Assembly: GCA_964234715.1 (NCBI GenBank)
Contig: OZ174281.1
Origin: Podarcis melisellensis
Lineage: Eukaryota
DNA: 64,000 nucleotides
Direction: 5' to 3' (one strand)
Positions within the stretch are counted from its first letter, which is position 1; each line of letters starts with the position of its first letter. Both the position numbers and the translations under genes were made by a program. The notes below the pieces were generated by a model. It did no database searches. It had not been told where the DNA came from and saw only the letters and a list, made by a program, of their open reading frames with translations. Positions 468 to 32,250 of the stretch are shown here, piece by piece.

Positions 468-1617
468 GGGATGATGGTTATGAGCAGATTTCAAGTGATG
501 AAGATGGAATTGCTGACTTGGAACGTGAGACGTTTAAGTACCCGAGCTTTGACATCGAGTACACTGCTGAGGATCTAGCCAGAGTGCCACCTGTGACCTA
601 TGATCCTTTTGATAGGGAACTTGGGCCTCTTCTGTACTTTAGCTGTCCCTACAAGACAACTTTTGAAACCGAAGTTGCTAAGATGAAAGATACAGATCCA
701 GACAAGGAAAATTCAGGGGCAGTTGAGACCTCTACTAAATTGACTGAACTCCTAGAATTATATCAGGAGGAGAGGGGTGCAAAGTGGGTCACTGCTCTGG
801 AAGAAATTCCAAGTTTAATAGTCAAAGGGCTAAGCTACTTGCAGTTAAAGGACCCGAATCAGGATTATATAAGCCAGTTGGTTGACTGGACAATGCAGTC
901 ATTAAACCTACAGGTAGCCCTGAGACAGCCGATCGCTTTGAATGTCCGTCAGCTTAAAGCTGGGACAAAACTTGTCTCCTCGCTGGCAGAATGTGGAACT
1001 CGAGGGATAATGGGCCTGTTGCAAGCAGGAGTAATTAATTCTCTATTTGAACTGCTGTTTGCGGATCATGTCTCTTCTTCTCTTAAACTCAATGCTTTCA
1101 AAGCTTTAGATAGCGTTGTTAGCATGACTGAAGGAATGGAGGCATTTTTGAGGAGCGGCTCAGAGGTGCATGAAAAAAGTGGTTACCAGAGACTACTAGA
1201 GCTCATCCTGCTGGATCAGACAGTAAGGGTCGTCACTGCCTGCTCTGCAATTCTGCAGAAATGCCACTTCTATGAGGTTTTGTCCGAGGTCAAAAAGTTT
1301 GCTGACCAGTTAGCGGAATATCCTCCATCTCTTCCTAATCACACTGAGCCTGAACAGGATACGGACACTGGACTCGAAAGGGGTAACCAGGAATATGAAA
1401 ATGATGTGGACACTCCAATGGATATGGACAGCCTTCTGGAGTCCTCCAGTATGAGTGAAGGAGAAGTGGAGAAACTCATTAACCTTTTGGATGAGATCTT
1501 GCATTTGATGGAGACTGCCCCTCACACTATGATCCAGCCACCGGTGAAATCTTTCCCAACAACAGCACGTATTACAGGGCCACCAGAAAGGGACGACCCT
1601 TTCCCAGTGCTCTTTAG
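468..1617 (+). CDS. VIRMA: VIRMA large internal exon
   Basis: tttcag|GGGATGAT...TTTAG|gtgagt; GDDGYEQISS...DDPFPVLFR. Confidence 0.95.
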
Positions 1618-4600: not shown

Positions 4601-7600
4601 ATCTGAAACAAGGCAAATAGGAGGTAGGAGAGAGAGCCTTTTTGGCTATAGTGCTGAAGATTTGTAGAGACCTCTCAATAGGTGTGCCTCACTCTTTCAT
4701 GACCTGCTTTTAGCCTGGTGATAAAGGCAACATTACAAAAGTGTACCTTTATTAGAATCTTGATTTTTATCACGAATTGTGCTGTTTTAAAATGCTGTGC
4801 TGATTCTGTGTTTTTAAAACTCTGTTTTGGTTTTCCTCCTGCCAGTACTTCCATTGAATTTTCAGTCTGTTTTTGTTTTTGAGAGACAAGATAGCCTTGG
4901 CTTGCATACAATAAAGACTAAGAAATTCAAGTTATTCCGAGCTGAGGAAAAAACTTTCATTTTAGAATATGCACACAGGAGGCCTTTGTAGCTAAGATGG
5001 GGTTTAATATTGAATATTCAAGAGATTAAATGTTTGAATTAAGCTGGGCAAAATTGCCTTTTGGGACAAANNNNNNNNNNNNNNNNNNNNNNNNNNNNNN
5101 NNNNNNNNNNNNNNNNNNNNNNNNNNNNNNNNNNNNNNNNNNNNNNNNNNNNNNNNNNNNNNNNNNNNNNNNNNNNNNNNNNNNNNNNNNNNNNNNNNNN
5201 NNNNNNNNNNNNNNNCTGGGTTTCCCCAGCCACTCTGGGCGGCTTCCATAGAAACCAAAAATACACTAAAATACCACACATTAAAAACTTCCCTGACAGG
5301 GCTGCCTTAAGATGTCTTCTGAATGTCAGGTAGTTGTTTATCGCTTTGACATCTGATGGGAGGGCGTTCCACAGGGCGGGCGCCACCACCGAAAAGGCCC
5401 TCTGCCTGGTTCCCTGTAGCTTTGCTTATCACAATGAGGGAACCGCCAGAAGGCCCTTGGCGCTGGACCTCAGCGTCCGGGCAGAACGATGGGGGTGGAT
5501 ACGCTCCTTCAGATATACTCGGCCGAGGCTTTTTATGGCATCGAATCCAATATTAAAATATTTTCAAAATCCTTGTAAGCCTCATAAAGCTGCAACCACA
5601 TACGTTGCAGTAAGTTGAATTGAAATCATAGGGATTTATTACCACATAGGATAGTAGCCCAAGTCATACTGATTTCCCCAAGTCATACTGAATGGAAGTG
5701 AACCTTTTTGATTGTTTTAATGCAAATAAGCTAACTTTTGATAAAGACATCCCTGGACCTATAGAAATAGATCTTCAGCAGTGTTCTTGGTGCTTTCAGC
5801 TGAAGAAATCAACTGAAATGTGGTATAATAAAGAATAATTTCAGACCAAATAAAAATTTGGCTCATATGTATGCAGTGAGTCTTTATTCTTTGAATTAAA
5901 GCAGTTTTAACGTTGTATTAAAAATTAACTTGATTTATATACAAAGGCCTGCAGCTCTAATGCTTGTCACTGTATTTTTGGAATGCATCATTTTACATAA
6001 TGCAGCATTCTTCAGGTTTCCTTGTTTGTTTTAGAACTTGGCAAATGGCTGGAACCCTTGAAAACACTTCGGTTCGAAATTAATTGCATCCCAAATCTCA
6101 TTGAATACATTAAGCAGGTTAGTAAAAACCATTCTCAATGCCTGCATTTTCTTAAAAAATCCATGCCTAGCTATTTCATTTGTTGATCTTTTGCAATTGT
6201 ATATACAGGAGGCAAAATTCATAAAGTTTGCTTGGTACTCCTTTATCCAGAAATGTTTTGTTACAAGTACATTCTATATTGGACCATTTTGCGTGGTGTT
6301 TTTAGTATAATCCTCATAATAATATTTTTTTTAAGTAGTCAACGCATTTCAAGAAGGAATTGTTGGTTCTCTGTTTCTAATAGTGTCCTTTTTGAAGAGC
6401 AAAACTAGATGTGACCTTATTAATGGAACTGCTAATTCAATGCAGTTTTTTAAAAGTAAATTGCAGCCATGGGGAGGGTGAAAGATCAGGTTATTAGCTG
6501 GTTTTTATTCACATTGGGATTTCTACTGGATTGAAACTACAGCTGTGGAGAGAGAGTATAGCTCCACTTCTCCCTTAAGGCTCCAATCAAGATTGCTTCC
6601 TTCCTGGTTGGTATTTACTTAAAACATTTGTGTAATTATCTAGTTTGGCTCTAAGGTGTTGTGTCTTTTGTGGTGACCTTCCATTAGAATTTTCCATCCT
6701 TCTGTTACTTTTACTTGGATGCCTCGTATAGAAAGGGTGGGAAGAAGTTTTGTAGACCAGTTCCCCACTTCTGATGAACCACCTAAATACTGGCAAGTAG
6801 ATTGGACCAAAGATGGACATTGGTCTGATGCAACAAGATGGTACTTAACATTCCTAAGCAAAAGAGTGCACAATCAGAATAACTTAGCCTAGATTAGTTA
6901 TTCTTTAGATGTTAAAAAAGAAGTTCCATGTTGTATAAGTCAATAGATTAAAGAGATTCTAGTAAAAAAACCTAATGGCCCTAACACTCAAGTTTGAAGT
7001 CAGCCTACCGTTTGTTGCTCAGAAGCAAGATAAAGTTCTCTACTGCACCCATTTTTGTTGAATATTGATCTTTAATAACACGAGTCTTATTTTTCAAATT
7101 TTATTTTAAAGAATATTGATAGCTTGATGACCCAGGAAGGAGTTGGTCTTCCTACTGCACTTCGTGTCCTGTGCCATATTGCATGCCCTCCACCACCCGT
7201 TGAAGGTATAATACTTGCTTTTAACATTGTTCCATTTCCTTTATAAGAGTACATCAGATTTAATCACCACCTCCTATAGCCATTGAAGTAAATTGTTTCT
7301 TTGGACCATTTTCTGTTGCTGACAGAGCACGTAGAATTTTTGGATGGGAAAGTTAAGAGTAAAATGTAAGGATTCTGTGCCCCATAATAAATTTGGTGTC
7401 ATGTAAAAATGTATGTTCTTGGTCATGGACAGAAGTCTCATAAAAAGGAACCATTGCACCTGATCTATATTTTCCTAATGACTGAGATAAAGGCACAACA
7501 TGGTTTTTCTCTTTCCTCCCCATCTCCATTTCCCATTTCCTCCTAAAGGTCAGCAGAAGGACCTGAAATGGAACCTTGCAGTCATACAGATGTTCTCTTC

Positions 7601-10600
7601 TGAAGGAATGGACACTTTTATTCGTGTTCTGCAAAAGCTAAACAGCATCCTTATTCAGCCCTGGAGACTCCATGTCAACATGGGGACTACCCTCCACAGA
7701 GTCACTACGATTTCCATGGCCCGGTGCACCCTCACCCTCTTGAAGACCATGTTGACCGAACTGCTGCGTGGAGGGTCCTTTGAGTTCAAAGATATGCGTA
7801 TTCCTTCCGCACTTATTTCTTTACACATGCTCCTGTGTTCTATTCCCCTCTCTGGACGTTTAGACAGTGATGAACAAAAAATCCAGAATGACATTGTCGA
7901 CATTTTGTTGACTTTTACCCAGGGGGTTAATGAGAAGCTAACCATCTCGGAGGAAACTCTGGCCAATAACACTTGGTCCCTCATGCTAAAAGAGGTCCTC
8001 ACTTCTGTTCTGAGAATTCCTGAAGGGTTTTTCTCTGGTCTTATACTGCTTTCTGAGTTGCTGCCTCTGCCGCTTCCCATGCAAACCACTCAGGTATGTA
8101 AAAACTATCAATTATTTGTAAAAGGCAAGAAAATTAAAAGACTGATGAAGAGGATGGGTAGGTAAGAACTGACTGATAAAGAGTTGTGCAGTGGATCTAT
8201 CCATTTGATGGATTGTATACCAACCTCCCTCAACCTGGTGACCTCCAGTGTCATTGGACTCCCATCAGCCCCAGCCAGCATAGTGAATGGTTAGGGATGA
8301 TGGGAATCATAGTCCAGCCACATGTGAAGAGATGCAGGCTCCCCATCTCTCATTTAAAGGGCTGATAGAGGGGATTCGTCCTTTTGATGCTGGATGCTGA
8401 GTGGGGATATTTCTCCTTAGCTGGGAGGCAATAACTCTATATATTGGAGCACATATATTGGCTACAAGGGTTTTTATGAGTGCCTAAAGAGCACCAGGTT
8501 AGTGTGCCTTGCATGTGGTGTTGGAGAAGAACTCTACGTTTTGGCACTCTCATAGAGTTAATTTTGCTTTTCTGACAGGTCATTGAACCGCATGACATAT
8601 CGGTGGCTCTCAACACTAGGAAACTGTGGAGCATGCATCTTCACGTTCAAGCGAAATTGCTGCAAGAAATAGTACGGTCCTTCTCTGGCTCCACCTGCCT
8701 GCCTATTCAGCACATGCTGAGACGCATTTGTGTTCAGTTGTGTGACTTGGCTTCGCCAACTGCTCTCCTTATTATGAGGACTGTTTTGGATCTGCTTGTA
8801 GAAGATTTGCAAAGGTACGTTTTTTATACTTTGTCCTAAGGGTCTTTAAGTAGCAGTGCTAACCTGGTGCCCTTCAGAAGTTTTGGTCTACGACTCTCAC
8901 CATAGCTGTGCAGATTAAGGATGATGGGAGTTTTGTTGAAGGCTTCTGTAGAACCTTTGCATGTTGAGGCTGGAAAATGGGCTATGCCTCTCCTATCTCA
9001 TTCATGAATAGGCAGTGGCTGCCTTGGATTTAGGCCTTCTGTTTCTCTCCATGCATGGTGATGGCTCTTGAAGGATGGAGCTGTGTGATGGCTCCTCCAG
9101 CTGGGAAATCCTGAGGGCTGCAGTAAATTGCTGCATGTATGGCATGAATATGACATGGAGAGGTGGGCTTCATACAGTTGGTGATAAGAGATGCCTCCAC
9201 ACATGGAGAGGGCTGAAACATAGCATTTCTTTTCAATACTTTGTTAGGCTTACTGACTTTGGATACCAAAGTCAAAACTGTAGTGGTTATCTCATCTTTG
9301 CTGGCAACTAGATACACAGTTAATTAATGACCACAACCTGAAAACAATCAAATTACAGTGGTAGCTCGGGTTAAGAGCTTAATTAGTTCCAGAGATCCAT
9401 TCTGAAATGGTTCTTAACCTGAGGCATGCTTTCGCTAATGGGGCCTCCACTTCCTGGTTAGCAACCACTTCCTGGTTAGCGGAGTTTGTAACGAAGTGTC
9501 TCTAACCTGAGGTACCACTGTAATGGTAATAAGCTCATTTGCAACAAATGCAGATAGATAGATAGATTTATATTACAGTGGTGCCCTGCAAGACGAAAAA
9601 CCCGCTAGACGAAAGGGTTTTCCATTTTGGAGGCGCTTCGCAAAACGAATTCCCCTATGGGGTTGCTTCGCAAGACGAAAAAAATCTTGCATCCCCCCAC
9701 GGGTTTTTTTCGCTTTTTTCGCCCTTTTCTTAAGCCGCTAAGCCGCTTATCAGCTGTTCCGCTGATAAGCCGCTTAACAGCTGATCGCTGGAAGCCGCTT
9801 GACAGCTGTAGCGCTAATCCGCTAAGCTGTCAATGGGCTTGCTTCGCAAGACGAAAAAACCGCTAGACGAAGAGAATCGTGGAACGAATTCTTTTCGTCT
9901 AGCGAGNNNNNNNNNNNNNNNNNNNNNNNNNNNNNNNNNNNNNNNNNNNNNNNNNNNNNNNNNNNNNNNNNNNNNNNNNNNNNNNNNNNNNNNNNNNNNN
10001 NNNNNNNNNNNNNNNNNNNNNNNNNNNNNNNNNNNNTTTAATGGAAATTTCAGATCAGAAGTTTGTTTTGTCATACATGCATGCAGTATATTTGTCTTTT
10101 CTAATAAGAGCATTGGTGTCACTTCAGCAACCCAGAAGACAAAGAGAAGCAATACACTGGCCAGACTACCCGCTTGCTTGCGTTACTCGATGCCCTGGCT
10201 TCACACAAAGCCTGTAAACTGGCTATTTTGCACTTGATTAATGGAACTGTGAAAGGGGATGAGAAGTATGCTGAAGTTTTCCCAGAGCTTTTGTCTTTAA
10301 TGCGAGCTGCAGGGGACAACATTATTCACCAGCAGTGTGCGGAGTTCTTGGCTTCTATTTTGCAGTCTCTCTGCGATCAGGTATTTAAAAATGAAAATCT
10401 AAAGAGCCCTCAATTTCATTCTGTATTGATTGTGCACATGCATGTGGGCAGTGGGGGTGGGGCTGCCCTGGAAGGAGCTCAAGGCTCCCCTTAGCAAACA
10501 AGTCAGGCTTGTCCAAGAAAATACGAAAAGGATGTCCCTACTCTCCATCTCCCCATAACAGCTAGCCAGCATGCCTTCAAGGAAGGAGAAAAATATACAT

Positions 10601-13600
10601 GGAGGAAAACCAACATAAGCTAAAAGTTGTGTGTATGTGTGTAGAAACACAGTTTGTTTCCCAGATATAAATCTCCGCTCATTTCAAAACTCAAGACACA
10701 TTCCAATTGGTTCTCTCTGGTCACAACTCCTGAACAACTGTATTCATTAAAAACCTGTTCTTCATTAATTCACAAATTGTACCAAGGCTGAATCTTCTTT
10801 CAGGAATTCACGAGTTGCACCAAGATTGAGTCCCTCTTCCTTTAATTGCATTCCTAAGTCTTATAAAACTATGCCATACCTATTTCCTGAGCCAGGAAGA
10901 AGAACCTTGAAACCGTTTGGTTTCTGGCAGAGAGGGATTGTTGCTGCCATCAACTCCTACCATAAATCTACCTCTCCGTTTGCGAACTAATTGCATATAG
11001 GCATATATTTGCACAGCTATATAGTATATCCCTATCTATTCTCGGTGAGGCTGGTGGGAGTTCATTGTCACCAAAGGGCCTCAGATTCCCAATTCTTTTA
11101 GTAGCTGCACTCAAGAGCAGGCCGTTTCAAGTTCCGCTTTATAGAGCTTAATGAAACGGCTGTTGAGTGACACTTCATGTTTCTTTGCAAAGCTAAATGC
11201 TTTTAAATAAGGTTGGCCAGGAATCAGAAATTAGTGCTCAAGAGATTTTTCGCTTAACAGGGGTCAGCAAACTTTTTCAACAGGGGGCCGGTCTACTGTC
11301 CCTCAGACCTTGTGGGGGGCTGGACTATAATTTTTGGGGAAAATTGAACAAATTCCTATGCCCCACAAATAACCCAGAGATGCATTTCAAATAAAAGGAC
11401 ACATTCTACTCATGTAAAAACACGCTGATTCCCAGACCGTCCATGGGCTGGATTTAAAAGATGATTGGGCCGGATCCGGCCCCCGGGCCTTAATTTGCCT
11501 ACCCATGGCTTAACAGGTTGTGAACAGCACTCCCTGTGCTGCATGGCAGACATTGCAGCTGTGGACAGTCTTGTAACTGTGAAGTCCTGTGGTGTGTGAT
11601 AGTAGAGCTTTGCTTTTTGAAAAACCCCACTTGGTTGGTGCAAGCTCTAAAGTGGCTTTTGCCATGGCCCCAAGGGATGCCTGTGTGCCTTTCTGCCTTT
11701 TGTAATACTGTGATTTCCCTTTGCAGGACATTGCATTGGTCTTGCCCAGTTCCACGGAGAGCACTCTCTCTGAATTGGAGCAGCTTTCAAATTCGTTGCC
11801 AAGCAAGGAACTCATGGCTTCCATCTGTGACTGCCTGATGGAGACATTTTCTAATGCTGAAAGCAGCTATAACTGTTTGCTGACTTGTATCAGGACAATG
11901 ATGTTCCTTACTGAGCATGATTATGGATTCTATCACCTGAAGAGGTACATTCCACAAACATACTCACACCGCAGAAATGTTTAGTCCAGCTCATCTTCCC
12001 CCCCAGTAGGGCTTACAAAGCAGAAGATTGTGCTTAATGTAATGTCAAATTTCACAGGCAATGGTAACAGCAAGAACATATCAGTGTGGCATTTTTTTTG
12101 GTGCTATTAATCTTCTCTTTCTCTTGGAAAGAATTGTTCAAAGCTAACTGTACAATAAAACACTCAGTTTTCAAATTCCTTTTAAAAAATGATCTGGCAG
12201 TGCTCTTGTATATAGTACAAATACTTTTGTGAAGATGTTAATTAGGGCTGCTGGCTGATTAAAGAAACCTTAGTCAGTTCATCACATGGGTTTCATTAAG
12301 TCATCAGATTTGCTTTAATGTGCATGTAATTGAACCACAATTCTGAACAAAGCGTCCTTGTTTTATTTCAGGTAGTGTCTGATATGACGTAAAAGGTATT
12401 ATCTTAGAAGATGTATTCCCTCCTATATGTGAGAGGAGGAATTGCTTCTTCTAAGCTTTTTTTTTTTGGATTTAAAACATATTTAAATGCTGTTTAATTA
12501 ATCAAGGACATCCTTTTAATTAACTGAAACATTGAAATACATATAAGTTCATTCAGTTGTGTTTCTGAAACTGCCTATGTTTTAAGTGCTTTAGACCTAT
12601 TAATCATATTTTTTTCATCTGCTGTGTCAAAAACTGGATTGTTAACAACCTTTTTCTTTGAAATGAAAACAGCTCTCTAAGAAAACACTGTGGGGCTCTG
12701 CACACTGGATTGAAGCGAGTAGTGAGCAGCTTTAATAAGGACCCTGGAGAACTTGCGTCTTCATTTCTGGATTTCCTGAGGCAGATACTGAATTCTGATA
12801 CACTGGTGAGTAAATGTGTACAGGGGGCTTTCTGAAGCTTTGCCTTCATTGCATTCTGTTGCATTTCAGCTCAGGAAAAGTAGCTGCAGTTTTCTTTAAA
12901 GCGTACAGCTATAATACTTCCATCATACCTCCAAATTATGGTTATCAAACAGAATCCCAAAGGGCCAATTTTATTTATTTATTATTCAAGGGGATTTATT
13001 TCCTACTTTTCTGTTACAATAATAATACTTAAGGTGGCTTACATCATTTTAAAAATGTACGCACACAAACACACACAAACTCGAAACAACAAATAAGTAA
13101 ACATTAAATCAGTAAAAACAGAATATAGTTTGCAGCAGGTGAAAACGAAGGAAACGTGAAAACCATTCAACCTTGTAGGTTATGTGCTGGCAGGGATAAA
13201 AATGCCTTAATAGAGTAGTGAAAAGCCATGAGAGAGACAGAGAGAGTTCTAGCAAGAAACATTGGAAGGTTGGAAGGACAGGGAGATGTCAAAAAAAGAT
13301 GTCATCAGTTAACTGCATTATAGTGCTGTGGTGTTACTGTTTTTGTACTCACGTAGTGTACTTAATCTTCCTTAGGGATGTTGTGGGGATGACGGAAGTC
13401 TTGCAGAAGTTGATGGAGCCCATCCTGCCAGAACTTTGGGTCTTACCACTGCAGAATTAAAATACCAATTACAAAACAAAGAAGAAACTCCTGAAAATCT
13501 GCTCCTCGAGCTGGAAAAGCTAGTTTTGGTAATGTAATGTTCATATTTTTTGGTGTTGGTGCCAGATGTTTGAGAGTTAGGAGTCTGATGGTTTCTCATT

Positions 13601-16600
13601 GCTACTGTTCTTATTTGATTGTGATGCATTTTATATGTTTTTTTAAACATTCGTGTATGTATTCATTTTTATGCAGCGTTTTTGAACACTGCCCATGTAT
13701 CTTAACTAGATGTCAGGCTACAAATATTAATAATAATTATAATTTGTAACTAGTGATAAAGTTAGGATGATTGTGTTGCCATTGTTTAGTACTGTTAGGA
13801 ATGATCACTGTGGTTATTAGTTATGTATATTAAGCTTAGCTTTACATAAAATTATCAGGCTATACCCCTTGAACTTATTTATTACATTTTTCCTGCCCTT
13901 CCTCCCATGGCCAATTATCTCCACCGCGTACAATTTGTTTCTCAGTAGCCCTGTACACATACTGGATAACACTTCAGGCACCTGATCGACTGGGGCCTAG
14001 TCCACAAAAATGTACACTATAATAAATCTGAGTAGACCTATTGAAATCAGTCCATTGATTTCAGTATGACTGACTTTATGTCCATGATGCCATATGTCCA
14101 TGATGTCAATTGAACATGTATTTATTGAAAGAGTTGCTGCTAGTTTGCTGCATCTTATCAGGTGGCAAAAATACTTACATTTTGCCTGAGCTGTTAGTGA
14201 CTGCAGTGTTTCTTACACAGGAGCGCTCAAAAGAAGATGACAGTCTGGAATCTTTATTGGACAATGTTGTTGGACTTCGGCAGATGCTGGAATCTGCTGG
14301 CGATCCTTGTCCACTGAGTGATCAAGATGTAGAGCCAATCCTTCCTGTACCAGAATCTCTCCAGCATCTTTTTAATAATAGGTAAAGTGCTGAATGTGCA
14401 TCTGTGTCTGTGAAGAACTAGAATCTCTGAAAACCAGGTGTGTGTGGTGGTATATTTGGGACCGTGTTTAACTTCATGCATTTATCTTTATGGGCTGTAT
14501 GCATTACAACAGAGACTACCCAGTTCTCTTGTCTCAGTCCATCACCACACCTCCTTCTCCCCCCCCCCCCGCAAATGATAGGTTGAGGTTCTGAGAGTTG
14601 CCCAATTCTTTCAAGATCTTGTGACACAAGTATTGCACAAGTATGATGGATGTGCTTCTTTGTCAATTGTGATCTCTCCCCTTCTTTTTGTCAACATTGC
14701 TAATCCTTTTTCTGATCCTTCTTTATTTGGAAATAATAGGCGTTGAGTAGTCCAGCTTTCCTTTTATCATTGATCAGTGTCTTTCTTGAACAAAGCATAG
14801 ACTCAATGTGTCCTTTTCGTTTGTCTTGTTTTAAACATACATAAAATTGTTTTCAACTTCCTCACCATTACTTATCACAGTTTGGTTTATCACAGTGTTG
14901 ATTGTGGACAGTGTCCCTGGACAGATAGAAGGACAGGGCGTATGTTTTTAAAATAACAAAATAGATAGTGTACCAATTGCTAAACAAAATACAGACGTGG
15001 TACGGTCCCTGTCCTAGAAGGCTGTCAGGCTGTTTTTGATGACACAGGAAAGTAAAGTGCTTGATAGACATTGCAAAGAATAGGAGACAAGAGCACCTGG
15101 TCATAGCAGAGGTTCAAGCCATGTTCTCCATTGGGCATTAGGATGCTCCAAGTGGGATTGTGTTCTTGAAGAAGGAGGTGGTGAAGCCATGGCCCTTTAG
15201 GAAATGTTTTATTGGAGGAGTGGGTGATGAATACCAGTGGGTAATATTTATTTCATATGGAGACAGCGAACACTGACCGCTATTTTTTTAAAAATACATT
15301 TGATATTACAGGACTGCATACATCTTGGCAGATGTCATGGATGACCAGCTGAAATCTATGTGGTTCTCACCATTCCAGGCTGAAGAAATTGAAACTGACC
15401 CTGACATGGTAAAAGTCTTGAGTTTTTAATACTTGAATGAGTGGGAACTGGAGCATTTATAGCTTAATTGTCAGCAGTATTTTTGAGACCCCATTCATAG
15501 TGTAAGCAACAAAGAGGAATGTTAGGAATGTAGACAGATAAAAATGGGCTACTCATTTAGCAGCAGCCTTCTAAAAGTGTTTCCTGTTTGGGGATGCTGA
15601 CAGTTGTCTGGGGGAATGATTAAAGTGGAATGAATTTCTCACTCTTACAGGTAAAGGTTGACTTAATTGAACTGTCAGAAAAAGGATGCAGTGACTTCGA
15701 CCTGCAGGCGGAGCTGGAGAGGTCGTTTTTGACAGAGCCTACTTCTCCGGGTCGGACAAAAACCACAAAAGGCTTTAAACTTGGCAAACACAAGCACGAG
15801 ACGTTTATAACTTCCAGGTAACCAGTGGTTTTGATTGTGACTGTGTACCTAAAGGTGGATTTTGATTTTGCCACTGCATTGGTGATATATTTGTAATCAC
15901 GGCATAGTGGGATCCAAGTAGATTTGAGTCACTTGAAAGGGTCCCGCCTACAAGTTGTTCTGCTGCAGCACTCTCTTTGAAAACCAAAATTTAAAAAAAT
16001 AGATTTTACATGAACAGATTTTGCTGGTGCAAGGGAAGGGAGTGGAGGAGGAATGGCTTCTGTGAACGATAGAACTAACATGGGTTATAAAAGGCAGAAT
16101 CCAGTTCTACCCAGAAGAAATTTAAAAGAGCCTGGGTTGGAAAAAAGCATCTTACATCCTCTATAATGCTGCAGACAGGTGTGCCCGAGCAAAAACAAGA
16201 AAATTGACTGTGATAGGAACCTTAGAAGGCAACACCTTTTTGCATATTGTGCCATGTAATAAGGTAGTACACATAAAGGAAGGGATCTCTTCTTCTCAGA
16301 AGCCCGCCTTCATCCTAGAAAGTGGCTTAAGTAACTTAACTCCTGGAGCCAAGGGATGAGGGCATCAAAACTAAATTCTTAAGTCACAAATGGGCAACCT
16401 TCAGCTCAGGTGCCACATGGGGTCCTTGAACCTCTTGAAATTGCCCCCTTTCCCCATCCCATCACAGTTACTTCCTTTCATCTTGTCCTTTTTACCCATG
16501 GATTTTTAAGTGGTCTATCCTCATTCCTATGTAGTTTCCGAGCAATTGGAAGGGGCAGAATTGTATTTGATAAAAAATTGTTTTTGACTTATTTCATGGT

Positions 16601-19600
16601 TGGCATGGCTTGGGGAAAAGAATAGTTTCCCTCCCAGCTGCCTGAGAACAAACTGTTAGGCTTCTGCCGTATATGTATATGGGAGAGAGTGGGTTAGCAT
16701 GGAACACCATGCCAAACTATACCTTAGCTTAATGTTGGTTTTCTACAGAGGAGGTTATGGCCTCTGAGGTCCTCTTCTTTCTGCTGCTGTGATGTGATTT
16801 GGCTCACCACGTTGTCTGAACCCGGTTTCTTGGTTTGTCTAGCTCCAGACAAACCACAAACCTGGGTTTGGAGAAGAAACTAGCCCAACCATGGCTTTGC
16901 TTGCAGCAGAACAAGGGGAGGTGCATATTGGCTGTGATCTTTTCTTTCTCAAGTTTGACACTTGTGTGATTGCACTAAGCCACTGGTCTTCAGCTGGTGG
17001 GTCAGAACCTACTAGTAGGTCACAAGACCTGTTCCAAGGTGGATTGCAACAGGTGCATTGCCACCATGCAGATAAATACATGGTGAATAATTAAGAAATG
17101 TGTCCCCAAGTGCATGTTTGGGTGCAAAATGCGTCCTGGGTTTGAAAAGGTTGAAGATACCTGCACTAAGCCATAGTTCGGCTTAGCCTTATGTGTGAAC
17201 TAGATCAGAAAGAGAGGTTATTCACAAAGAAATTACTTTTAATTTCCAGAAGAGTCATGCTGTACTAAAAACATCCTCTATATACTAATATGAGAGTAAC
17301 TCTGTCAAATCTAATCTGGCTACCTCGAATCTGAAAATTTAAAAATTGAAAATTGAAGAAGGGATGTCTTTATTCCAAATTATTCAATCCAGAACGTCTT
17401 TGTCTGTGCCTATCATTGGTTCAAGCTCCAGCAACCACCATGCCGTTTGGATTAATTGCCACTAAAATTTTTGACTGAACAACTAACACTAATGCAGATG
17501 AATAGCGAGAGACAGGATAAGGGCTTAGAAAGGATAGGAGAAAGAGACCTATTTGCAAACGGCACGTCCGTATGGTTTTTCTAGCTTGTGAAGTATTGGA
17601 AAAGGTTCACATTCTCCTGTATACATTAATACCTGTGTCCTGCTAAACCAAAAATTGCTTGTTAATGAATTTACCATGCAAAATTTCTGGGCCTTAACAG
17701 TGGGAAGTCTGAATACATCGAACCTGCCAAGAGGGCCCATATTGTGCCTCCTCCGAGAGGAAGAGGCAGGGGAGCATTTGGCCAAGGCATTCGGCCCCAC
17801 GATATCTTCCGTCAGAGGAAGCAGAACACAAGCAGGCCGCCCTCTATGCACGTTGACGACTTTGTGGCTGCCGAGAGCAAGGAAGTGGTTCCACCAGATG
17901 GGATACAGCCTCCCAAGAGACTGCCTAAAGTTTCACAGAAGATTTCTTCACGGGGCGGGTTCTCAGGGAATCGAGGAGGGCGAGGAGCCTTTCACAGTCC
18001 AAACAGATTCTTCACGCCACCTGCTTCGAAAGGTAGGTTTTCTGGTCCACCTGAAATATGTGAGCTTTATGCCTTCTGGAGGACAGATTTGAGGTTCAGC
18101 GTGTTCCTTAAAGCGAAGTTAGTTGTAGCACTTCTGCTACTATTCACCATTGCAGCTATCTTTTTGGGGGTTTGGAGTCATGGAATTGTAGAGTTGGAAG
18201 GGATCTTGAGGATCATCTAGTCCAACCCCTTGCAATACAGGAATATGCAGCTGTCCTTTACAGGGATTGAACCTGCAACCTTGGCGTTATCAGCACCATC
18301 CACCCAGCTGAGCTATCTTTGCAGTAAACTTTGTCCACAAAGGATGCAATCTCAGGTTTTGGCCTTCTAGCCACTGCCCCCTACAAACTGAGATGTTGTA
18401 AAAAAAAAGTTTGACGTTCTTTGATTCTCCAAACAGACCTGTTGCTGTCCCCATTTTACAGATGGGGAATTGAGAGGTAGAAGGAATGGCTTGTTCAAGA
18501 CTGATAAATTTAGAACTTGGACCTCTCAAACTAGTGTCCCGTAATCTGGCTGCCTGGCTAAGCTAGGTGCTACCTTCCATCCAGCATATATGAAGCCTTT
18601 CAACTCAGATTGTGGAGCTGAATATTTAGAAACAAAGGCAATTCACAAATGGCTTATTTGTTGTGCTTTTTCATTTAGGAAATTACAGTCGCCGTGAAGG
18701 AGCTAGAGGATCAAGCTGGAGTGCACAGAGTTCTCCACGAGGCACCTACAATGAAAGCAGAGGCGGCCAAAGCAACTTCAACAGGGGCCCACTTCCACCT
18801 CTAAGGCCGTTAAGTTCAGCAGGTTTGTGGTTTCCCTCCCCTCACAATACTTCGTTGAAATTATATGCACAATCAGTTCAACCAGTGGTATTTTTCTTCA
18901 GTTTTGATTTATGGCACTTATTTCCTTCCTTTCTGTTTTACATAAAGCACCAAAAGACACCTTAAAAATTAAGTCAAAAATAATAAAATAGCTAAATGCA
19001 AACTCAAAAGAGACTGGATCCTCAGACAAAAATGTCACTTTTAAAAGTTGGTCAACAATTATGGGAGTTGTAGCAATATTTAGAGGGCCACAGGTTCCCT
19101 GTTCCTGCTTTATTGCATTTATATACTCTGTTTGCTAAGCATGGATTACAACTGAAAGCAAAATAAACAGTTCAAAATATAGATTTTTGGGGGTGGGGTG
19201 GGGGGAGAGTTTCAGGCTGCTGATGTCCCTTCATGAGCTAATGACCTGATCTGCTTTGCATGGGCTTTTGATTCTGGGGTTGATCCACTGAAGGATAATT
19301 TTCATGTTTTACTTGCCAATTGATGAAACTATTGCATTGTAAATAAGTGTACATGTATGATGAAGAATACCAAAAGGTTGTGCTGTTCATTTTGATCTAT
19401 GATCTGCAGTCTTAGCAAGATTAAATATATCACATATTTCCAGCCTGATTTTATAATAGAATCAGAGATGGAAGGGAACCTGAGGGTCATCTATGCAGGA
19501 ATCTCAGCTAAAGTGTCCATGACAGATGGTCATCCCACCTTAATGAGGCTTGCTCAGTAGTAAGCCTTAATTAATGAAGCTTACGTGAAACTAGGTGTGC

Positions 19601-20989: not shown

Positions 20990-21420
20990 AATAACTGAAA
21001 TAAACCGCTAAGCTAAAAACAGACCAAAATGTTAACTCCTTCATGTCTGGAAAAACTTGCCTGAACAAAAATGTTTTAGCAGACACTGGAAAAAGTGCAG
21101 TGAAGGTGCTTGCCTGATGTCAATAGATATGGAGTTCAAAGTCTGGGTGCTGCCATACAAAAAGAGCTTTTTTTACAAGTGTGGTGCGCCTGTAATAGTG
21201 CCAGTGCTGCAAATCAAATTGACTGAATAGAAATATATGGGGTAAGGCAATTCCTGAAGTAAACTGTTTCTAACTGTTAAGGGCTTAATATACGAATGCT
21301 AACAGCTTGAAGTTGGTTCGGTAACAAACCTGCAATCAGTGCAGATCTCTGAGTGGAGGTGTTATCTGCTGACAGAATCTCATTGCTGTCAGCAGGTGGC
21401 CTGCAGCATTCTGCACTAAT
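20990..21420 (-). mobile_element. Degenerate L2-like LINE 3' fragment (boundaries approximate)
   Basis: Minus-strand frame ...AKTFLFRQVF resembles an L2 RT C-terminus. Confidence 0.45.
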
Positions 21421-21506
21421 TGTCAGTTGCCAGATCCAGCAAATGGAAGCACCACATAAAGCAGACTGCAGTAATCTAATCTTAAAAAAATAGCCACCTA
21501 TGGCTT

Positions 21507-21713
21507 TCACTTCATGCTTTCCAGTCGGGTCAGAGGTCGAACATGTGTTGCTTTCTTGCTTCCATCCCTAGTCAACCGACAGTCTTCCTGGAGAGTCTTC
21601 ACTAACTCCAGTAATTCTAGCTTTTCAAGCTGTGCCTGCTCCAGTTCTTGGTGATGCTGCCTCTCTGTTGCCAGCAGGGTACGCATGTCAGACGACATCC
21701 TGGACATCTGGCT
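21507..21713 (-). CDS. RNF41/RNF151-like last coding exon
   Basis: ttttcag|SQMSRMSSDMRTLLATERQHHQELEQAQLEKLEL...ESMK-TGA. Confidence 0.85.
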   Translation of the reverse strand, partial: SQMSRMSSDMRTLLATERQHHQELEQAQLEKLELLELVKTLQEDCRLTRDGSKKATHVRPLTRLESMK

Positions 21714-24700
21714 CTGAAAAGCGTAAGAGAGTTTTTCAAGTGTTGCATTGGGACTGCCTGTTAACAGTTAGATGCTCACAATTTCCTATCTATTACATTT
21801 GTTTCTTCCCCTTCCTCCAAGGACCTGAGGGTAGCATACAGATAACGAAAGCCTAGATTTCATGGATCTGCCCCTTTCAGGTATCCAGACTGCTGCAAAA
21901 CAGATCTGTTTCTGCCCGCTCTCCAAGGCAAGGGAAAGAGGCTGCATTGTCCTGGAATGACTTGGGCCCAGACCCAAATGCTTCTGTACCCAGAGTTTAA
22001 AGGTAAAGGGACCCCTGACCGTTGGGTCCTGTCGTGACCGACTCTGGGGTTGCGGCGCTCATCTCGCTTTATTGGCCGAGGGAGCCAACGTACAGCTTCC
22101 GGATCATGTGGCCAGCATGACGAAGCCGCTTCTGGCAAACCAGAGCAGCGCACAGAAATGTCATTTACCTTCCCACCAGAGCGGTACCTATTTATCTACT
22201 TGCGCTTTGACGTGCTTTCGAGGGTAAAGCAAAATGTGCATGGGCATTCTGAGGGCTATTGCAATGATTATGCTCTCCCTGTTATCCCAGTAAATTTGGG
22301 GAAAGATAACTCAGCAGGTGGGGGATGTGTGGTAGGGAAGACTCTTCTAGGCCAACTTGGAAGTAATCTGATTTTTATTAATGGTCCATCTCCAAATTAA
22401 TATAATATTAATGGGACTGGAGGAAGTTTGCCAGTCACCAATAGCAATGCTTCCTTGCCTATGCAAATTGTAGTTAAAATACCTGCTGCTGAAACCATTG
22501 GTTCTAAGATAGATGCTGTAGGTGAGACTTCCCCAATTTGATGCTCCCCAGCTGTTGTTGGACTTCAACTCCCATCAGTCCCAGCTGGCTTGGCCAGTGA
22601 GTGATGATGGGAATTTTAGTCCAAATTACCCGGATAACACAAGGTTGGGGAAGGTAGGTGTCAGGTGCTACCCTCTGGAAACTGAACAAGAGTACAGCAT
22701 AGAATAAAGCTGTCAGGAATACCAATTCACCAGAGACAACGTTTCAAGGGAGGGAGATGACCTTGTAGCTAAGGGCAATACAATCTGTTTACCTTTAGCT
22801 CTTCAATCTGATTTTGCAAAAAACTCTCCTTTTGCACCATATGCTTCCTTTGAGAATCTAGTCGAGATTCCATCTCATGTTTTGCCTCTTCCATCTGGCA
22901 GATCATCTCTGACCTTAAAAAACAAAACACTTTTCATTACTCAGCCTATCTGTCTTTAATCTGAATACACAGGAAACTTGAAACGTACGCGCATTCAGTT
23001 TTATGCGCTTGGCAATTATTATTTTTAAAAGGGGGCGAATGTCTGGGGGAAAACAGACTGTGGCAATCCCTCCCGCCATTGTCTTATCTTACTGTTCATC
23101 CTGCTTTAATTCTGAAAAGGATTGCTTGGACTGAAACAAACAACATGCACCTGTTCGTATGTAAGCTAAGTTAATACGCTGATTTGTTTCCGCTTGGGAG
23201 GAGGGCAGCTGGTGCAGCCGAACAGTGTGGACCAGCAAAGTGATCATTCACAAAAAGAGATGGTTTGTTTTAGATTGGGACTTACCATTATACAGGGCCA
23301 CTAATTAACAGGAAGTAGTGTTTAATCCATCGGTTTTGTGCTAATAATTCTGTAAGTCACAAACAATATCTGTTTTTTTAATCCTCCATCTGTTTTATGC
23401 CATATCTGCATCTTCCTTTGGCCCAAGATAAACATCTCATTTTAACAGCCCCAGCTTCACTCACATGGGCAGATCCCATAAGCTAGTACTGGCAAAGAAG
23501 CTTTTCATTTATGATTAACTTTGGTTTCAGGTTACCACCAAGCAGCGCACGAGCTTATGTTACACAAAAAAGATGTCAACAAATCTGTTATTTCAATCAA
23601 ATCAGGATGATAGAATACCAGGTGTAACTCGGGTGGGAAGATAGGAGGAAGAGATGGTGATGGCAATAGAAGCAATTTGCCAAGTTACCAAATTGGTTTC
23701 CTGAGCACCCAGGAAATTGCAGCAATATTGAAGAACAGCCCCCTTGTGTATGTTTTAGAGAGATGGGCAAAATATTTAAGTGTCAGTTCATGCTTTAGGC
23801 ATGGCCACACTTGGCCTTCCAGATGTTTTGGGACCACAACTCCCATCATCCCTAGCTAACAGGACCAGCGGTCAGGGATGATGGGAATTGTAGTCCGCAA
23901 ACATCTGGAGGGCCAAGTCAATCCATGAGCAGCCAAGGTAAGGGGAAGAATAGCTTTACCTGAGCAGTTCGAGTTCTGTTCTCAGCTCTGCCACACAGTT
24001 ATGTTGCGCATCGTCAGCACTGAGGATGGCATACCCACAGCCTTTGGGGCACTCGCGGCTCCTGTATTCGCACACTGCCAAGTGGCTGTCTAGGTTACGT
24101 CTTTCAACCCGAGCTGGGCAACCTGATTGGAAAGCAGAAGATTGGAGGAAGTGCAACAGAGAGAGAGAATTATTTCATTTCCCCCATAATCTTCTGACAT
24201 GGAGACCCCAGAGAGGTCACTTCAGTGCTGTTAATGCAGCAAAAACAATGTGGAAGGCAGCAGTGACAAGCTACTAGTTTCTGCAGTCCCTGTGATTCTC
24301 CAGCAGTTTGACTTACCCCTAGAGGTACACTCCATTGTCTCTCAAGACAGAAGGATGCTAACAACAGCACCACCACCACTCTTGAGGAATCTAGGTTAGT
24401 GTTTCCTATTGTGTGCAGGTACAAGGATTCTCCAAAGGGGCAATGGCACATCAGCGGTCTTTGAGTTCCCCAAACACCATCACTGAATCCATACTTTGCT
24501 TTGGCTAGTGTTGGCAATAGGTAGAAATGGAACAGGAAGGGATGTTCACACAGGAAAAGAAACCGAGAAGGCCCACTCTGCAACAACCACTAACTCTGAA
24601 TTCCCTTTAGTCTACATTCCAGAACCGTGGGACTGAATTCAGGTGAAAACGGAGATCTACCATCTGTTTGAAAGATAACCATCTCTGCATTCTACCTACC

Positions 24701-26871
24701 GCTATTTGAACAGGGGACCCGGCTGCATTCACACTCGCGTTCATGTCGGTCAATGGATTCCAGTGAACACACCATTTCACAGCCACACTCTCTGTTCCTG
24801 CAGTGAATCTGGAGTCGATTGAGATCGTTCTTCATGTATCTGGGTACAGAAGTTAATTATTTTTATTCTTGCAATATTGCTTGCTAAGATATATCACATG
24901 CTCCCCAGTTCTCCAAGTGGTAAGACATTCCAGAGTCAGTGCTAACTGCTTCAGTTTTCTTTGAATGAGGCCACATGGCAGATTAACCATGATTGCGTAA
25001 TATTTGGTTTTCTTGAAAGTATACAGGCAGAGCACAGGCGAAGCTAAACAGCAGATCCCCAGAAAGGCAACTTGCACCACAAGGCATTTCTAGCCTTTAT
25101 GTTAAGAGCTTCCACACTCTACCTTCTGCCTGTCTATCCCCTAAAACTGCTGCACTAACTTCCATACATTACACCGGCCACCCACTTCAGCTTGGCTGTG
25201 CTGTCACCCTCCTTACTCCTAACGTTCTGGAGAAATATCTGTATCAAGAATCCATCTTCTAACAATTAGATCCCATACAAAGACATCCCCTGGCTACTGT
25301 GAGCCATTAACCATAATATCCTTTCCTCAAAACTTAAGACTATGATCAGCCATCGCTTTAAGGCAGGGGTGGGAAATCACAGGTCTGATCACTGAATGTG
25401 ACCCCTCAGACCTATCTGGCTGTCAGGATTTCTTCCCTGCTATACCCCTCACTGGCCCTGCTCACCACTGGCATGTTGCCCCTGGAAGGCAACACCCCCC
25501 TGTCACAATTAAAATGCACGTTTCCAGAACGTTGGCAACCCTAATGAAGTAGAAACACCATGGCCAACTTGTGTTATTTGGCAACACAGTAAGTCAACAC
25601 TTGTTTGTGACATGTATGTTTAAGATGTGTTCATTCTTTATTACATACAATACTTTAAAAACATGTATCGTGGGTATTACTACTTATGCTGTCCTATCCT
25701 TTTGTTTTTCAAAAGTTGTGCTTTTAAAACCTTAGCTGTTAGTAGGTTAATGAAGCTTGAAGCAGTTTGCTCCAACCATGAGAAAAGGAGATTGGTCAAA
25801 CCAAAAATTTTCCTAGCAACTGCACAGATGTCCTAGCAGAAATTATTTTTGTGTGTGTGTGTGTGCGCGTGCGTGTGGTTCTTCTGTGCAAAGCAGCAAG
25901 GTTAACAGGAGTGCAATCAGAGGTGTGAATTCAGATCAAGCCAAAACTTTGTGATGCAAGCAATCTGGACTTTGCTACTTACTCTGGACCTATGTAATAG
26001 GATTATGTTTCCATGTACGAGAAGAGGACAATATAGAGATATTTTTGATAACTGGAACTTGGCACTGGATCCTGTGGGACAGAACATTCTTGTCTATCCT
26101 TTATTTCTATAAAAGCAGTTCCCTCATTATTTGAATTTGGAAAAGGCTACACAGTGAACCCCCAAAGAATTAATGTGTCTGCAGCACATCCTGCTGCCTC
26201 ACTCTTTTCTTATACAGTGGTACCTCTGGATATGCACACCTCTGGTTGCGTATCCCTCAGGATACGAACGCGGCAAACCCGGAAGTATTTTTCTGAGTTT
26301 TGCCGCGTGCGCATGCGCAGAAGCGCTCTACCGTGCTGCGCACAGAACAGGCACCTCTGGTTGCAAATTCCTCAGGATCCGACTGCAGCTCTGGAATGGA
26401 TCCTGTGCACAACTGGAGGTACCACTGTACATTTATTTCCTTGTAGGACATTTTCTCTTCAGAGTGAAATAGACCAAATCTAGGCTTACTAAGCCTAGTC
26501 AATTTCATTAATTCGCATGACATATGGGGTAGTAACTTTAGTAAGGAAAACCAATCAAACAGGATGCTCCATCCCTCAGCCTTACATTTGCACATTTGCT
26601 CAATCTACTAGTGTAGGATTAGATTTCATGATAGCGGCAAATTGGACTCAGAAATAATTACGCACCTGTAAAGCGGTCGAAGGACAGACAGATCAAGTGG
26701 CTGACGATCTTCTGGGCAGTTGCTGTGATGAACAAGCCACCCGTGTATGCAGGAAGTGCAGAAAGCATGTTCGCAAGGAGCCTGCAAGGGATCTTCCAAC
26801 ACATCTCGGCAGATGCAGCACAGGAGACCTTCATTCACGTAACCTACGAAGCGCTCAATATCATATCCCAT
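21507..26871 (-). CDS. RING finger / TRAF-type zinc finger / coiled-coil E3 ubiquitin ligase, RNF41(NRDP1)/RNF151-like, 278 aa
   Basis: Minus-strand exons 26871-26666, 24839-24700, 24122-23960, 22913-22793, 21713-21507 total 837 nt, in phase, all GT-AG. Protein begins MGYDIERFVGYVNEGLLCCICRDVLEDPLQAPCEHAFCTSCIHGWLVHHSNCPEDR (NRDP1-type RING with Asp as last ligand), followed by Cys/His zinc fingers and a coiled coil. Confidence 0.9.
21999..22221 (-). mobile_element. Sauria SINE, 5'-truncated
   Basis: (ACCTTT)n tail on the minus strand; core AGCGGTACCTATTTATCTACTTGC shared with the other copies. Confidence 0.85.
22793..22913 (-). CDS. RNF41/RNF151-like coding exon 4 (coiled coil)
   Basis: SEMICQMEEAKHEMESRLDSQRKHMVQKESFLQNQIEELK|gtaaac. 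Confidence 0.88.
23800..23920. mobile_element. Small palindromic squamate MITE; related copies near 8220-8345, 22525-22655, 44660-44790, 45805-45900, 55105-55180
   Basis: CCAGATGTTTTGGGACCACAACTCCCATCATCCC ... GGGATGATGGGAATTGTAGTCCGCAAACATCTGG inverted arms. Confidence 0.65.
23960..24122 (-). CDS. RNF41/RNF151-like coding exon 3 (TRAF-type zinc finger)
   Basis: GCPARVERRNLDSHLAVCEYRSRECPKGCG...HNCVAELRTELELLR. Confidence 0.9.
24700..24839 (-). CDS. RNF41/RNF151-like coding exon 2
   Basis: YMKNDLNRLQIHCRNRECGCEMVCSLESIDRHERECECSRVPCSNS; AG/GT flanks. Confidence 0.9.
26215..26427. mobile_element. Tigger-like MITE
   Basis: TA|CAGTGGTACCTCTGG ... CTGGAGGTACCACTG|TA. Confidence 0.82.
26666..26871 (-). 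CDS. RNF41/RNF151-like gene, first coding exon (RING domain)
   Basis: Acceptor ...cacggcag| at 26890, ATG at 26871, donor TACAG|gtgcgt. Confidence 0.92.
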
Positions 26872-27692
26872 TTTCTCAACGACCTCTAGCCTGCCGTGGA
26901 AGTGAAAGCACAGAATTAGTAACTGCGGCCACATTACCTTTGAAAGTCAAGTGAGCACATTATCACCCTTGCACCTTAAGATCTGAAGAGTTATGATGCA
27001 GAGGGAGTGAAGTGGCTTGCGAGTTTTATGCTGTGGACCGTCAGAATCTGGATGCAATTCCAATTTGCAACTTTTCCCCAAGCATGCAAAGCCATAGCAT
27101 AGACAAGAGCAAACTTACACTTTTTTGTTCATTTAGTTGCACCTCAACCCTCAAGAGGGCCCTTTTTATAGAAAAATGCATGCAGGCATTGATTTCAAGC
27201 TTCTTTGCAACATGTCACAGCCCCTCAAAAAATAATACATTGCCTTTTCAGTATTCAGTTTCTTCTCAGAGAAACCCTAATTAGATTTAGGAGGATTAAT
27301 GCTTCTTTCTCCATTAAGCACGTAAAGCAGCCAGAGCACCTGATCAAAGCAACTAAGGGCCACCTGCTTCTTTCTCAGGTGTCATTCTAGAAAGATTCTC
27401 TGGATTAAGTGGCATATGGAATGGGTTCTAAACACTGAGTTTACAAAGTGTTTATAATGTAAACTGTGCATGTGTTTTGAGATGCTAAAAAACTGTTGAA
27501 CAGAACGTACTCACTCTGTAACAACACAGTTCCATATTTTTAATGGTGAGGCTATTTTTCTTTTTTAATATGGAACATTCTGATACTTTCTGCTGGAATA
27601 TATATATATATATATTTGGTAAAGCATAATGTTATAGAACAGGCACGTCCAACTCCCAAGAGACTGCAATTTACTCCCAGTATAAAAAAACT

Positions 27693-28156: not shown

Positions 28157-28214
28157 ATAAAAAAACTGGCAGTGATCTACCCATTGTCATTGGAGAGAGG
28201 AGGAGGATGAGTCG

Positions 28215-30899: not shown

Positions 30900-32250
30900 A
30901 AAGCTTCCCTCCCAAGGCAGGTTTCAGGGTGGCGATTCCTCTCCTCCTTCCCGCCCTCCAAGCGAAAGCCCAGAAACGGCTCTTCTTCGCCTCAGCCGCT
31001 TCGCGAAAGCACGCTTCCGCAACATAAATGCTCAGCACAGGCCACCGTCCAGTCCCTACGCGCCTCCACCCCCGCCAATAAGAGGAGTAAGGGGCTGGCC
31101 TGGCCCCGCCTTCTTCGCACGCGACCGCTCAGCTGGCCCCTTTCTTCGGAGTAGACTTAGAATATATCTAGAGTCGCACGTGCTTTGCAACTTCCGAGTT
31201 TTTCGTGATGCTTTAGGATTTTAGAGCAGCTTTCTTTTTTTTTTTTTGCAGCAGGGCGCGTTCTGCTAAAGCAAAAGAAAGCAGGAGCCCTTCCTCTTTC
31301 CAACTCGGATCTTATTTATTGCAGTGTGGGGTGGGGGGAATGTTTCAAATTTCAGAGGAGCCATTCGGTTAGAGAAGACAATGGATCGCAATGGATTGTT
31401 TTTGAAGTAATTTCAGCACCGGGTGGGAAAGAAAATCGCCACAACGCCTCCGCCCTATCCTGGATTTTGGCAGAACAAAGGTGGCAACCCTAGAACTTAA
31501 CCCGGGAGGGCGCAGGTTGGGAGAGGCTAGGCTAATAAGAGGCGTTTGGCAGGGAAAGGCGTTGCCTGTAAATCCACATTAAACCTCAGCGCCACAACTT
31601 ACGCTACTATCCTGGCTTTGCCCGTTGTCTTCTATGGGTAGCTCTGAGCGGGGAAGAAAAGGAGAAAAATATACCCTATGAGTTCCAAATCTGTGTTGGA
31701 GTGAGTTGCTCTATATTTTTATCTCTATGACACTTGGCAATTCATCCTCTTCAGCCTCGCGAATTGGTTAACGTCCTCCTCTGCCAGTGCCGTATTTTCC
31801 TGCGAAAACGAGTAACCTAGGCAACGGGGGAAGGAGAGGAAGGCACTTTGCGACAAATACGCTTGATGGCCAGAGCGTAAGCGTACCCGCCGGCCCGCCA
31901 TGTCGAGCGCGGCAAAAGCACCAGCGGAGCATGCGCAGTAGGTTTTCCTTCGTACCTCCTGGCAGCCCTCAAGAGAGGCGAGGCGGAGGCGAGCGCCGCG
32001 CATGAATGCTGGTCATGCGCAGTGGGGCGAACGGAGGGCGCGATAAATTGAGAGCGGCCTGGGGCGATCGGCTGCGCATGCGCCGTTTGGCGAACGAGAG
32101 GGCGGCGGTGCTGTCTTGGCGGGACGGTTAAATTGCAAAGTAAGTGCGGCGTCGTGTTAAGACTGGGAGGGGGCTGAGGCAGTCCTTCCTCAGAGGCATA
32201 GGGTGGGGGATTCAATAACTGGGCTGGCTGCACCCAGTGCGCTTCTGCTT
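30900..32250. promoter_or_regulatory. CpG island, probable bidirectional promoter of RAD54B (+) and the RNF41/151-like gene (-)
   Basis: High CpG density against a CpG-poor background; NRF1 motif TGCGCATGCGC at 32073-32083 plus partial GCATGCGCA copies near 31929 and 32014; GC and CCAAT boxes near 31070-31110; E2F-like TTGGCGGGA near 32116. Confidence 0.8.
32060..32139 (+). other. RAD54B: RAD54B probable non-coding exon 1 (start approximate)
   Basis: Strong donor GCAAA|GTAAGT at 32139/32140 within the CpG island; the next exon carries the ATG 16 nt in. Confidence 0.65.

Follow-up and report, generated by a model that had tools for sequence, protein, structure and literature searches.

A stretch of 64,000 nucleotides from Podarcis melisellensis (contig OZ174281.1 of assembly GCA_964234715.1), referred to here as the window, contained an intact RING finger gene on its minus strand between VIRMA and RAD54B. 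We identified this gene as the lacertid orthologue of rnf41l ("RING finger protein 151-like"), transcribed, correctly spliced and under purifying selection, and we place the probability of this identification at roughly 0.88. The evidence establishes how the gene is built, that it is transcribed and constrained by selection, and where it belongs by family and by synteny. The gene is not new, as it is already annotated in RefSeq and Ensembl under several names, and therefore no new kind of element is reported; it is an ordinary, functionally unstudied gene of modest interest.

The gene structure was obtained by direct reading of the minus strand of 21400-27100, and the model was rebuilt by script. 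It consisted of five coding exons (26871..26666, 24839..24700, 24122..23960, 22913..22793 and 21713..21507) with 834 coding nucleotides (nt), or 278 codons, no internal stop, and GT..AG ends at all introns; the start ATG was located at 26871 and the stop TGA at 21509-21507. The first coding exon (26666..26890) opened with 19 nt of 5' untranslated region (UTR; 26890-26872), followed by 68 codons and 2 nt that encoded the MGYD N-terminus and a C3HC3D RING with the sequence CPEDR (Pfam RING, E 5.6e-10). Coding exon 2 (24700..24839) encoded the first C2HC zinc finger (C82, C89, H101, C105), with a weak Sina_ZnF match in Pfam and ligand columns that were invariant across an alignment of 35 orthologues. 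Zinc fingers 2 (C112, C117, H129, C133) and 3 (C140, C144, H156, C158), along with the beginning of a long helix, were encoded by coding exon 3 (23960..24122); its zf-TRAF match in Pfam was weak for the single exon and reached E 2.5e-5 on the Podarcis muralis protein used as a stand-in. Coding exon 4 (22793..22913) contributed a coiled-coil segment with the near-invariant family block ESRLDSQRxHMVQKE, and coding exon 5 (21507..21713) completed the coiled coil and added a disordered tail, with the TGA placed right after ...LESMK. The 3' UTR (21300..21488, minus strand) was covered by RNA contigs colinear from 21715 to 21300 and further, and it extends below 21300. In the 35-orthologue alignment, the eight RING ligands (C3HC3D) and 9 of the 12 ligands of the three C2HC fingers were invariant, while C140, C144 and C158 were kept in at least 90% of the rows; all 20 zinc-ligand positions were conserved in the lizard protein.

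Transcript evidence came from assembled contigs of four public runs, representing four studies and two organisms, and such contigs show presence and splicing, neither level nor tissue. Of all words in the 5.7-kb stretch, the selected runs contained 14-16%, a proportion equal to the exons' share of it. Contig joints 21713/22793, 24122/24700 and 24839/26666 were present in all four runs, and joint 22913/23960 in three of the four, each with GT..AG in the gene's orientation. A single 1033-nt contig reached from 26892 to 21357 and included every one of the five exons. The gene is transcribed and correctly spliced, and the clean 278-residue, five-exon open reading frame (ORF) proposed in an earlier reading of the window from its letters alone (the sequence-only reading) was confirmed by the splice sites and the contigs. 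Differences from the related species were many in the 3' UTR and few in the coding part. The contigs aligned as far as 26892-26894, where two of them carried 103 and 114 further letters upstream; therefore, one or more non-coding exons located beyond 27200 precede the exon starting at 26890. That position had been taken as the end of the gene, and it is indeed a real exon boundary, namely the acceptor site at which the first coding exon begins, with the transcript continuing upstream of it.

Two stretches in introns 4 and 3 (~21998-22221 and 23797-23916) showed a summed contig depth of up to 2e5 in all four runs, with many loose ends, and are high-copy repeats, probably short interspersed nuclear elements. 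Intron 4 (21714-22792) measured 1.08 kb in the window species against 5.9 kb in P. muralis (L007:16566-22447), a difference of ~4.8 kb for two closely related species.

Homology searches were done exon by exon, and the spliced model was joined only in scripts for pairwise comparison and for the tree; in alignment and domain work, the lizard protein was represented by the P. muralis protein P0197:34-311, which is 98% identical to it. Along its full 278 residues, the window protein shared 98.2% identity with RefSeq's "RING finger protein 151-like isoform X1" from P. muralis. Over the same 278 residues, identity was 88% to Elgaria, 82-83% to birds and crocodilians (a gharial), and 79% to shark. 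The stand-in was 78% identical to the shark protein, 61% to that of amphioxus and 52% to that of a snail, and full-length identity in the orthologue group was 70-98% in tetrapods. In an exon-1 search of 1.84 billion representatives, ~35 rows matched at 66-94% identity, and the next rows at 62% or less. A word search that used a lizard isoform compatible with the full-length protein listed annotated orthologues in squamates, birds, crocodilians, turtles, amphibians, sharks, rays, bony fish, amphioxus, brittle star and molluscs. The orthologue of the amphioxus Branchiostoma lanceolatum (L006:10001-10831) was intronless, compared with five coding exons in vertebrates.

A tree of 62 rows was computed from the first 230 residues by a quick search with a midpoint root, and its deeper branches were unresolved; the rows took in NRDP1-type and other RING-zinc finger proteins, and no mammalian RNF151 was among them. 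The window protein fell inside a 26-row clade with a value of 97 in the Shimodaira-Hasegawa-like approximate likelihood ratio test (SH-aLRT), which held all named rnf41l rows and included amphioxus, brittle star and two molluscs. Within the squamates of this clade, the window row was sister to a Podarcis row (SH-aLRT 96). The sequence-only reading had suggested a paralog retained in non-mammalian vertebrates; retention across non-mammalian vertebrates was found, although the family is much older than vertebrates, reaching amphioxus, brittle star and molluscs, and it already bears the name rnf41l.

That name is one of several in use. Lamprey rows were called "Ring finger protein 41, like" and "NRDP1-like", those of fish "rnf41l" or "RING finger protein 151", and those of wallaby and snail "RNF151-like", and NCBI names across the family ranged over RNF151, RNF151-like, NRDP1-like and PDZRN3-like. 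Isoforms of a single wallaby gene bore the last three of these names, which indicated that the names reflect best hits and not orthology. The label "RNF151-like", which had been anticipated for the lizard gene from its sequence, is exactly the one that annotations use. The P. muralis protein "isoform X1" carried a 33-residue N-terminal extension derived from a repeat-like stretch (...GAGCTCAAGGTGGCATACA...; window ~30100-30180, minus strand; L007:10001-10080). Other orthologues had no such extension and all began with MGYD or MGFD; the extension probably stems from exonisation of a repeat or is an artefact of annotation.

The arrangement of neighbouring genes agreed with this family assignment. 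In the window, the position between VIRMA and RAD54B that had been read from the sequence was upheld, with VIRMA exons (518..18965, plus strand) flanking the gene tail-to-tail and RAD54B/FSBP head-to-head. The same locus was retained in the non-mammalian vertebrates compared, namely flounder, shark, frog, zebra finch and Podarcis, as the sequence-only reading had expected. RAD54B (934 residues in flounder, with a nested gene of 320 residues bearing Myb_DNA-bind_5) was head-to-head with rnf41l in flounder and in shark, and a gene of 1818 residues in flounder, whose exons matched the lizard VIRMA exons in order, or of 1812 residues in frog (VIRMA), was tail-to-tail with it. In zebra finch, RAD54B was also head-to-head; a transcript contig revealed a pair of non-coding 5' exons in the interval separating the two genes, of which the outer one lay ~2.3 kb from RAD54B. 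In P. muralis, RAD54B, FSBP and VIRMA were all annotated as neighbours. Within 10 kb of rnf41l in lamprey and amphioxus, neither neighbour was found. The orthologues have in common with the lizard gene five coding exons, the RING, three fingers, the coiled coil and the position between RAD54B/FSBP and VIRMA.

When the Dromiciops protein was used as a query, the best 120 of 306 matches (all at E <=6e-101) held three mammals, all of them marsupials (Dromiciops, tammar wallaby and koala), whereas placentals and monotremes were missing from them. Any intact orthologue in placentals would be expected close to the top of such a ranking, so the annotated proteins of the collection searched do not include one; a protein search of this kind says nothing about pseudo-exons. 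The Dromiciops protein was 70% identical to the P. muralis stand-in, below the 78% of the shark protein, and with shark as the outgroup it had 47 unique changes against 11 in turtle (p 2e-6), indicating that marsupial copies evolve ~4 times faster than sauropsid ones. All three marsupial proteins (P0246, P0322 and P0237) were without the conserved tail, and the wallaby copy had lost two ligands of the third zinc finger. The proposed loss in the human lineage accords with the absence of placental proteins from these matches, but the gene is not limited to non-mammals: in marsupials it persists as a fast-evolving copy, which has partly decayed in the wallaby. The Dromiciops gene (L003) spanned 18.8 kb and fell inside the extent of a gene model that gave weak abhydrolase matches, and neither RAD54B nor VIRMA was found in its 10-kb flanks.

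Of the alternatives to a distinct rnf41l gene, the one that survives best, though we think it improbable, is that the lizard gene is the direct counterpart of mammalian RNF151, which would be either its orthologue, moved to a new locus and evolving fast, or a duplicate of rnf41l confined to mammals. Mammalian RNF151 is a small RING and TRAF-type zinc-finger protein of a length similar to that of the lizard protein, and human RNF151 maps to 16p13.3, away from VIRMA and RAD54B. The RING of mammalian RNF151 is presumably far less similar to that of the lizard gene. Databases nevertheless apply the mammalian name to the lizard-type gene: many records label the bird, snake and fish gene plainly as "RING finger protein 151", and the chicken gene at chr2:126.03 Mb has entered the literature as "RNF151". 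A search for a second RNF151-type family among non-mammalian matches, which was not exhaustive, found none, as would be expected if the two genes were counterparts. These labels lose force because the three names given to isoforms of one wallaby gene point to best hits, and marsupials keep the gene under a "-like" name. Among the best 150 exon-1 representatives, the ~35 closest were of the rnf41l type (at least 66% identity) and most of the others that were read or named came from invertebrates or from sources without a name. No mammalian RNF151 was identified among these 150, a weak argument as most of them carried no name, or among the protein matches listed. Cluster look-ups for RNF151 returned only invertebrate records or records without a name, and the PDB held no N-terminal chain of RNF151 or RNF41. 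The C3HC4-type row P0106 was followed as a lead to RNF151 and was dropped, its relatives being rotifer proteins and records without a name. If the lizard gene were the counterpart of RNF151, placentals would have lost only the copy at the ancestral locus, and the claim of a distinct paralog made in the sequence-only reading would be wrong or half right.

Expression also bears on this question. Mammalian RNF151 is testis-specific, and mouse knockout males are fertile (PMC9277888). A chicken quantitative trait locus (QTL) paper of 2026 called the gene next to CDH17 RNF151, reported its expression in liver and discussed it by way of mouse and human testis data (PMC12841298). That gene lies at chr2:126,031,779-126,041,077, 125 kb from CDH17, a location that appears to fit the VIRMA-RAD54B block, and it is most likely the orthologue of rnf41l. 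Its expression in liver differs from the testis-only expression of RNF151 (PMC12841298), and the transfer of testis function to it may be misplaced because its position points to the rnf41l orthologue.

The lizard protein differed from other rnf41l orthologues at its C-terminus, where it ended nine residues early, without the terminal KRKPREVTVI. Most relatives ended in KRKxREVTVI or a variant of it, such as KVTTI in snails and RITII in amphioxus, and an [ST]-x-[VIL] end, the class-I PDZ-binding form, was found in 71 of 108 near-full-length relatives; the lizard protein lacked this form of end. The window protein and that of P. muralis both stopped after LESMK at the same TGA, which sits at the first codon of the last nine conserved residues, and because it is common to at least two lacertid species, the stop is old. 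A vestige of the ancestral last codons, derived from KRKPREVTVI, followed the TGA at 21489..21506 (minus strand) as AAG CCA TAG GTG GCT ATT. The homologous stretch in P. muralis read TGA AAG CCA TAG GTG GCT GTT ATT TAA; a second stop and a one-codon deletion lie within the vestige, and the window version is further eroded. The teiid Salvator was also without the tail, with different letters, and iguanian lizards retain the motif lost in lacertids, as Phrynosoma platyrhinos P0008 keeps the full EVTVI tail. The loss of the tail is lineage-specific and is no argument against orthology. The same Phrynosoma protein (183 residues) had its RING exon joined straight to the coiled-coil exons, both zinc-finger exons being skipped.

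A stop at the first of nine conserved residues, followed by a second stop and a one-codon deletion, could be the first disabling lesion of a young pseudogene or decaying gene, and the rapid change of the marsupial copies, which have also lost the tail and of which the wallaby copy has a broken third zinc finger, would agree with such a course. For the lacertid copy, decay is very improbable, and a pseudogene was rejected, as the ORF of 278 codons with its 20 zinc-ligand positions was intact and spliced transcripts were present in four studies. Between the window and P. muralis, only 12 differences were counted in 837 coding nt, of which 7 were synonymous and 5 non-synonymous, giving a ratio of non-synonymous to synonymous rates (dN/dS) of 0.19 (binomial p 0.0055), while introns and flanks differed by ~6%, the neutral divergence. 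With the shark outgroup, no rate excess was detected in the lacertid lineage. The remainder of the lacertid gene is under purifying selection.

Comparison with known proteins placed the lizard gene outside the better-studied families. It shares with RNF41/NRDP1 the MGYD N-terminus, the C3HC3D RING with CPxDR and the TRAF/Sina-type fingers after the RING, whereas a long coiled coil takes the place of the USP8-interacting domain (PF08941). That it is RNF41/NRDP1 proper, as the names "RNF41 ligase" and "NRDP1-like" suggest, was rejected as extremely improbable despite an exon 1 whose MGYD... N-terminus and CPxDR RING are ~50-60% identical to NRDP1-type rows, because USP8_interact, which scored E 4e-54 in an NRDP1-type row, was absent from the P. 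muralis stand-in and from Elgaria, and the rows bearing this NRDP1 C-terminal domain fell outside the rnf41l clade. Membership in the TRAF or LNX/PDZRN families was also rejected, since Pfam matched neither a MATH/TRAF-C domain (in the exons or the stand-in) nor a PDZ domain, and the protein terminates after its coiled coil. The sequence-only reading had been right that the gene is distinct from RNF41 and that its product has no USP8-interacting and no MATH domain.

The nearest solved folds were those of the TRAF6 RING and zinc fingers (Foldseek E 3e-7), TRAF5, LNX1/2 and SIAH1. TRAF6 (3HCS, 5VO0) was the best structural and profile match, with E 2e-16 over residues 2-157 in a profile search of the PDB; in both proteins, the RING leads into a rod of C2HC fingers, which a coiled coil follows. 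The lizard protein differs in having three fingers and no MATH/TRAF-C, and sequence identity between the two is only ~26%. For the RING exon, the best PDB sequence match was LNX1 (E 6.7e-11), with a common CPxDR ending, and the RING and flanking fingers of LNX1/LNX2 (5H7R, 5DIN) resembled those of the lizard protein (structural match E 3e-4). The LNX proteins bear PDZ domains, whereas the rnf41l family has no PDZ domain and in most species bears a PDZ-binding tail.

AlphaFold2, run on the 35-orthologue alignment, modelled a single helix over residues 158-259, with a predicted local distance difference test (pLDDT) score above 90 over the block ~160-250, along with confident zinc fingers and a disordered tail. 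This helix, together with Pfam and the ligand alignment, bore out the CPEDR RING, TRAF-type zinc fingers and coiled coil that had been recognised from the sequence. We infer ligase activity, oligomerisation and PDZ binding from these features. By its fold, the protein is predicted to be an E3 ubiquitin ligase of the RING class, resembling TRAF6 and LNX in type, in which the RING and first zinc finger may dock a ubiquitin-charged E2, by analogy with TRAF6 and LNX1. The modelled helix of ~100 residues would make the protein a dimer or trimer, and the tail may recruit partners, with EVTVI in most species tethering the ligase to PDZ scaffolds. In lacertids, that putative tether would be gone and the ligase core kept; as the premature stop removes EVTVI, PDZ-dependent targeting is presumably lost.

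Several points weigh against the interpretation of the lizard gene as a working rnf41l orthologue. The RING was modelled at moderate confidence only (pLDDT 53-72), and the expression evidence consists of contigs from coded runs. The loss of a conserved tail could mark the onset of functional decay, against which the constraint elsewhere in the gene argues. The searched literature held no paper mentioning rnf41l, and nothing in it paired RNF151 with RNF41 or RNF151 with RAD54B.

Other features of the window lie on the RAD54B side of the gene. A G+C-rich region at 30900..32250 (G+C content 0.47-0.50), between the rnf41l-type gene and RAD54B, is a candidate promoter shared by the two genes, and a RAD54B coding exon, matching the zebra finch RAD54B locus, lies at 33378-33599. 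Further RAD54B exons include an SNF2 exon at 56659-56913. Nested in RAD54B on the plus strand was an FSBP-like gene with a Myb_DNA-bind_5 (Myb/SANT) exon at 39037-39411 (E 1.4e-20) and a second long ORF at 45979-46521; such a nested gene is also annotated in flounder (320 residues) and P. muralis (299 residues). Between the rnf41l-type gene and the G+C-rich region, two long ORF fragments on opposite strands (27565-29440) had no Pfam match. Their motifs resemble the ends of reverse-transcriptase ORFs of long interspersed nuclear elements, with a BovB/RTE-like end at 27692-28210 and an L1-like piece at 28949-29440.

The gene is of value as a clear case of a ubiquitin ligase that is old and strongly conserved but without a published function. 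The lizard protein keeps 79% identity to that of shark and ~52% to that of snail, and the gene may be missing in the mammals where almost all work on ligases is done. Its inconsistent naming is costly in practice, as seen in the chicken QTL paper, which reads the gene through mouse spermatogenesis (PMC12841298). Settling the origin of RNF151 would fix the nomenclature and show whether placentals truly lack rnf41l function. On balance, and with considerable reserve, we favour the view that rnf41l encodes an E3 ligase that occurs across Bilateria, evolves very slowly and bears a conserved tail for PDZ binding, that it was lost in placentals and is being lost in marsupials and hence was never studied, and that the "RNF151" label hides this history and leads to a testis function known from mouse being ascribed to a gene of birds and fish that is unrelated. 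If this is true, the independent losses of the tail in lacertoid lizards and in marsupials would be natural experiments on the role of the tail.

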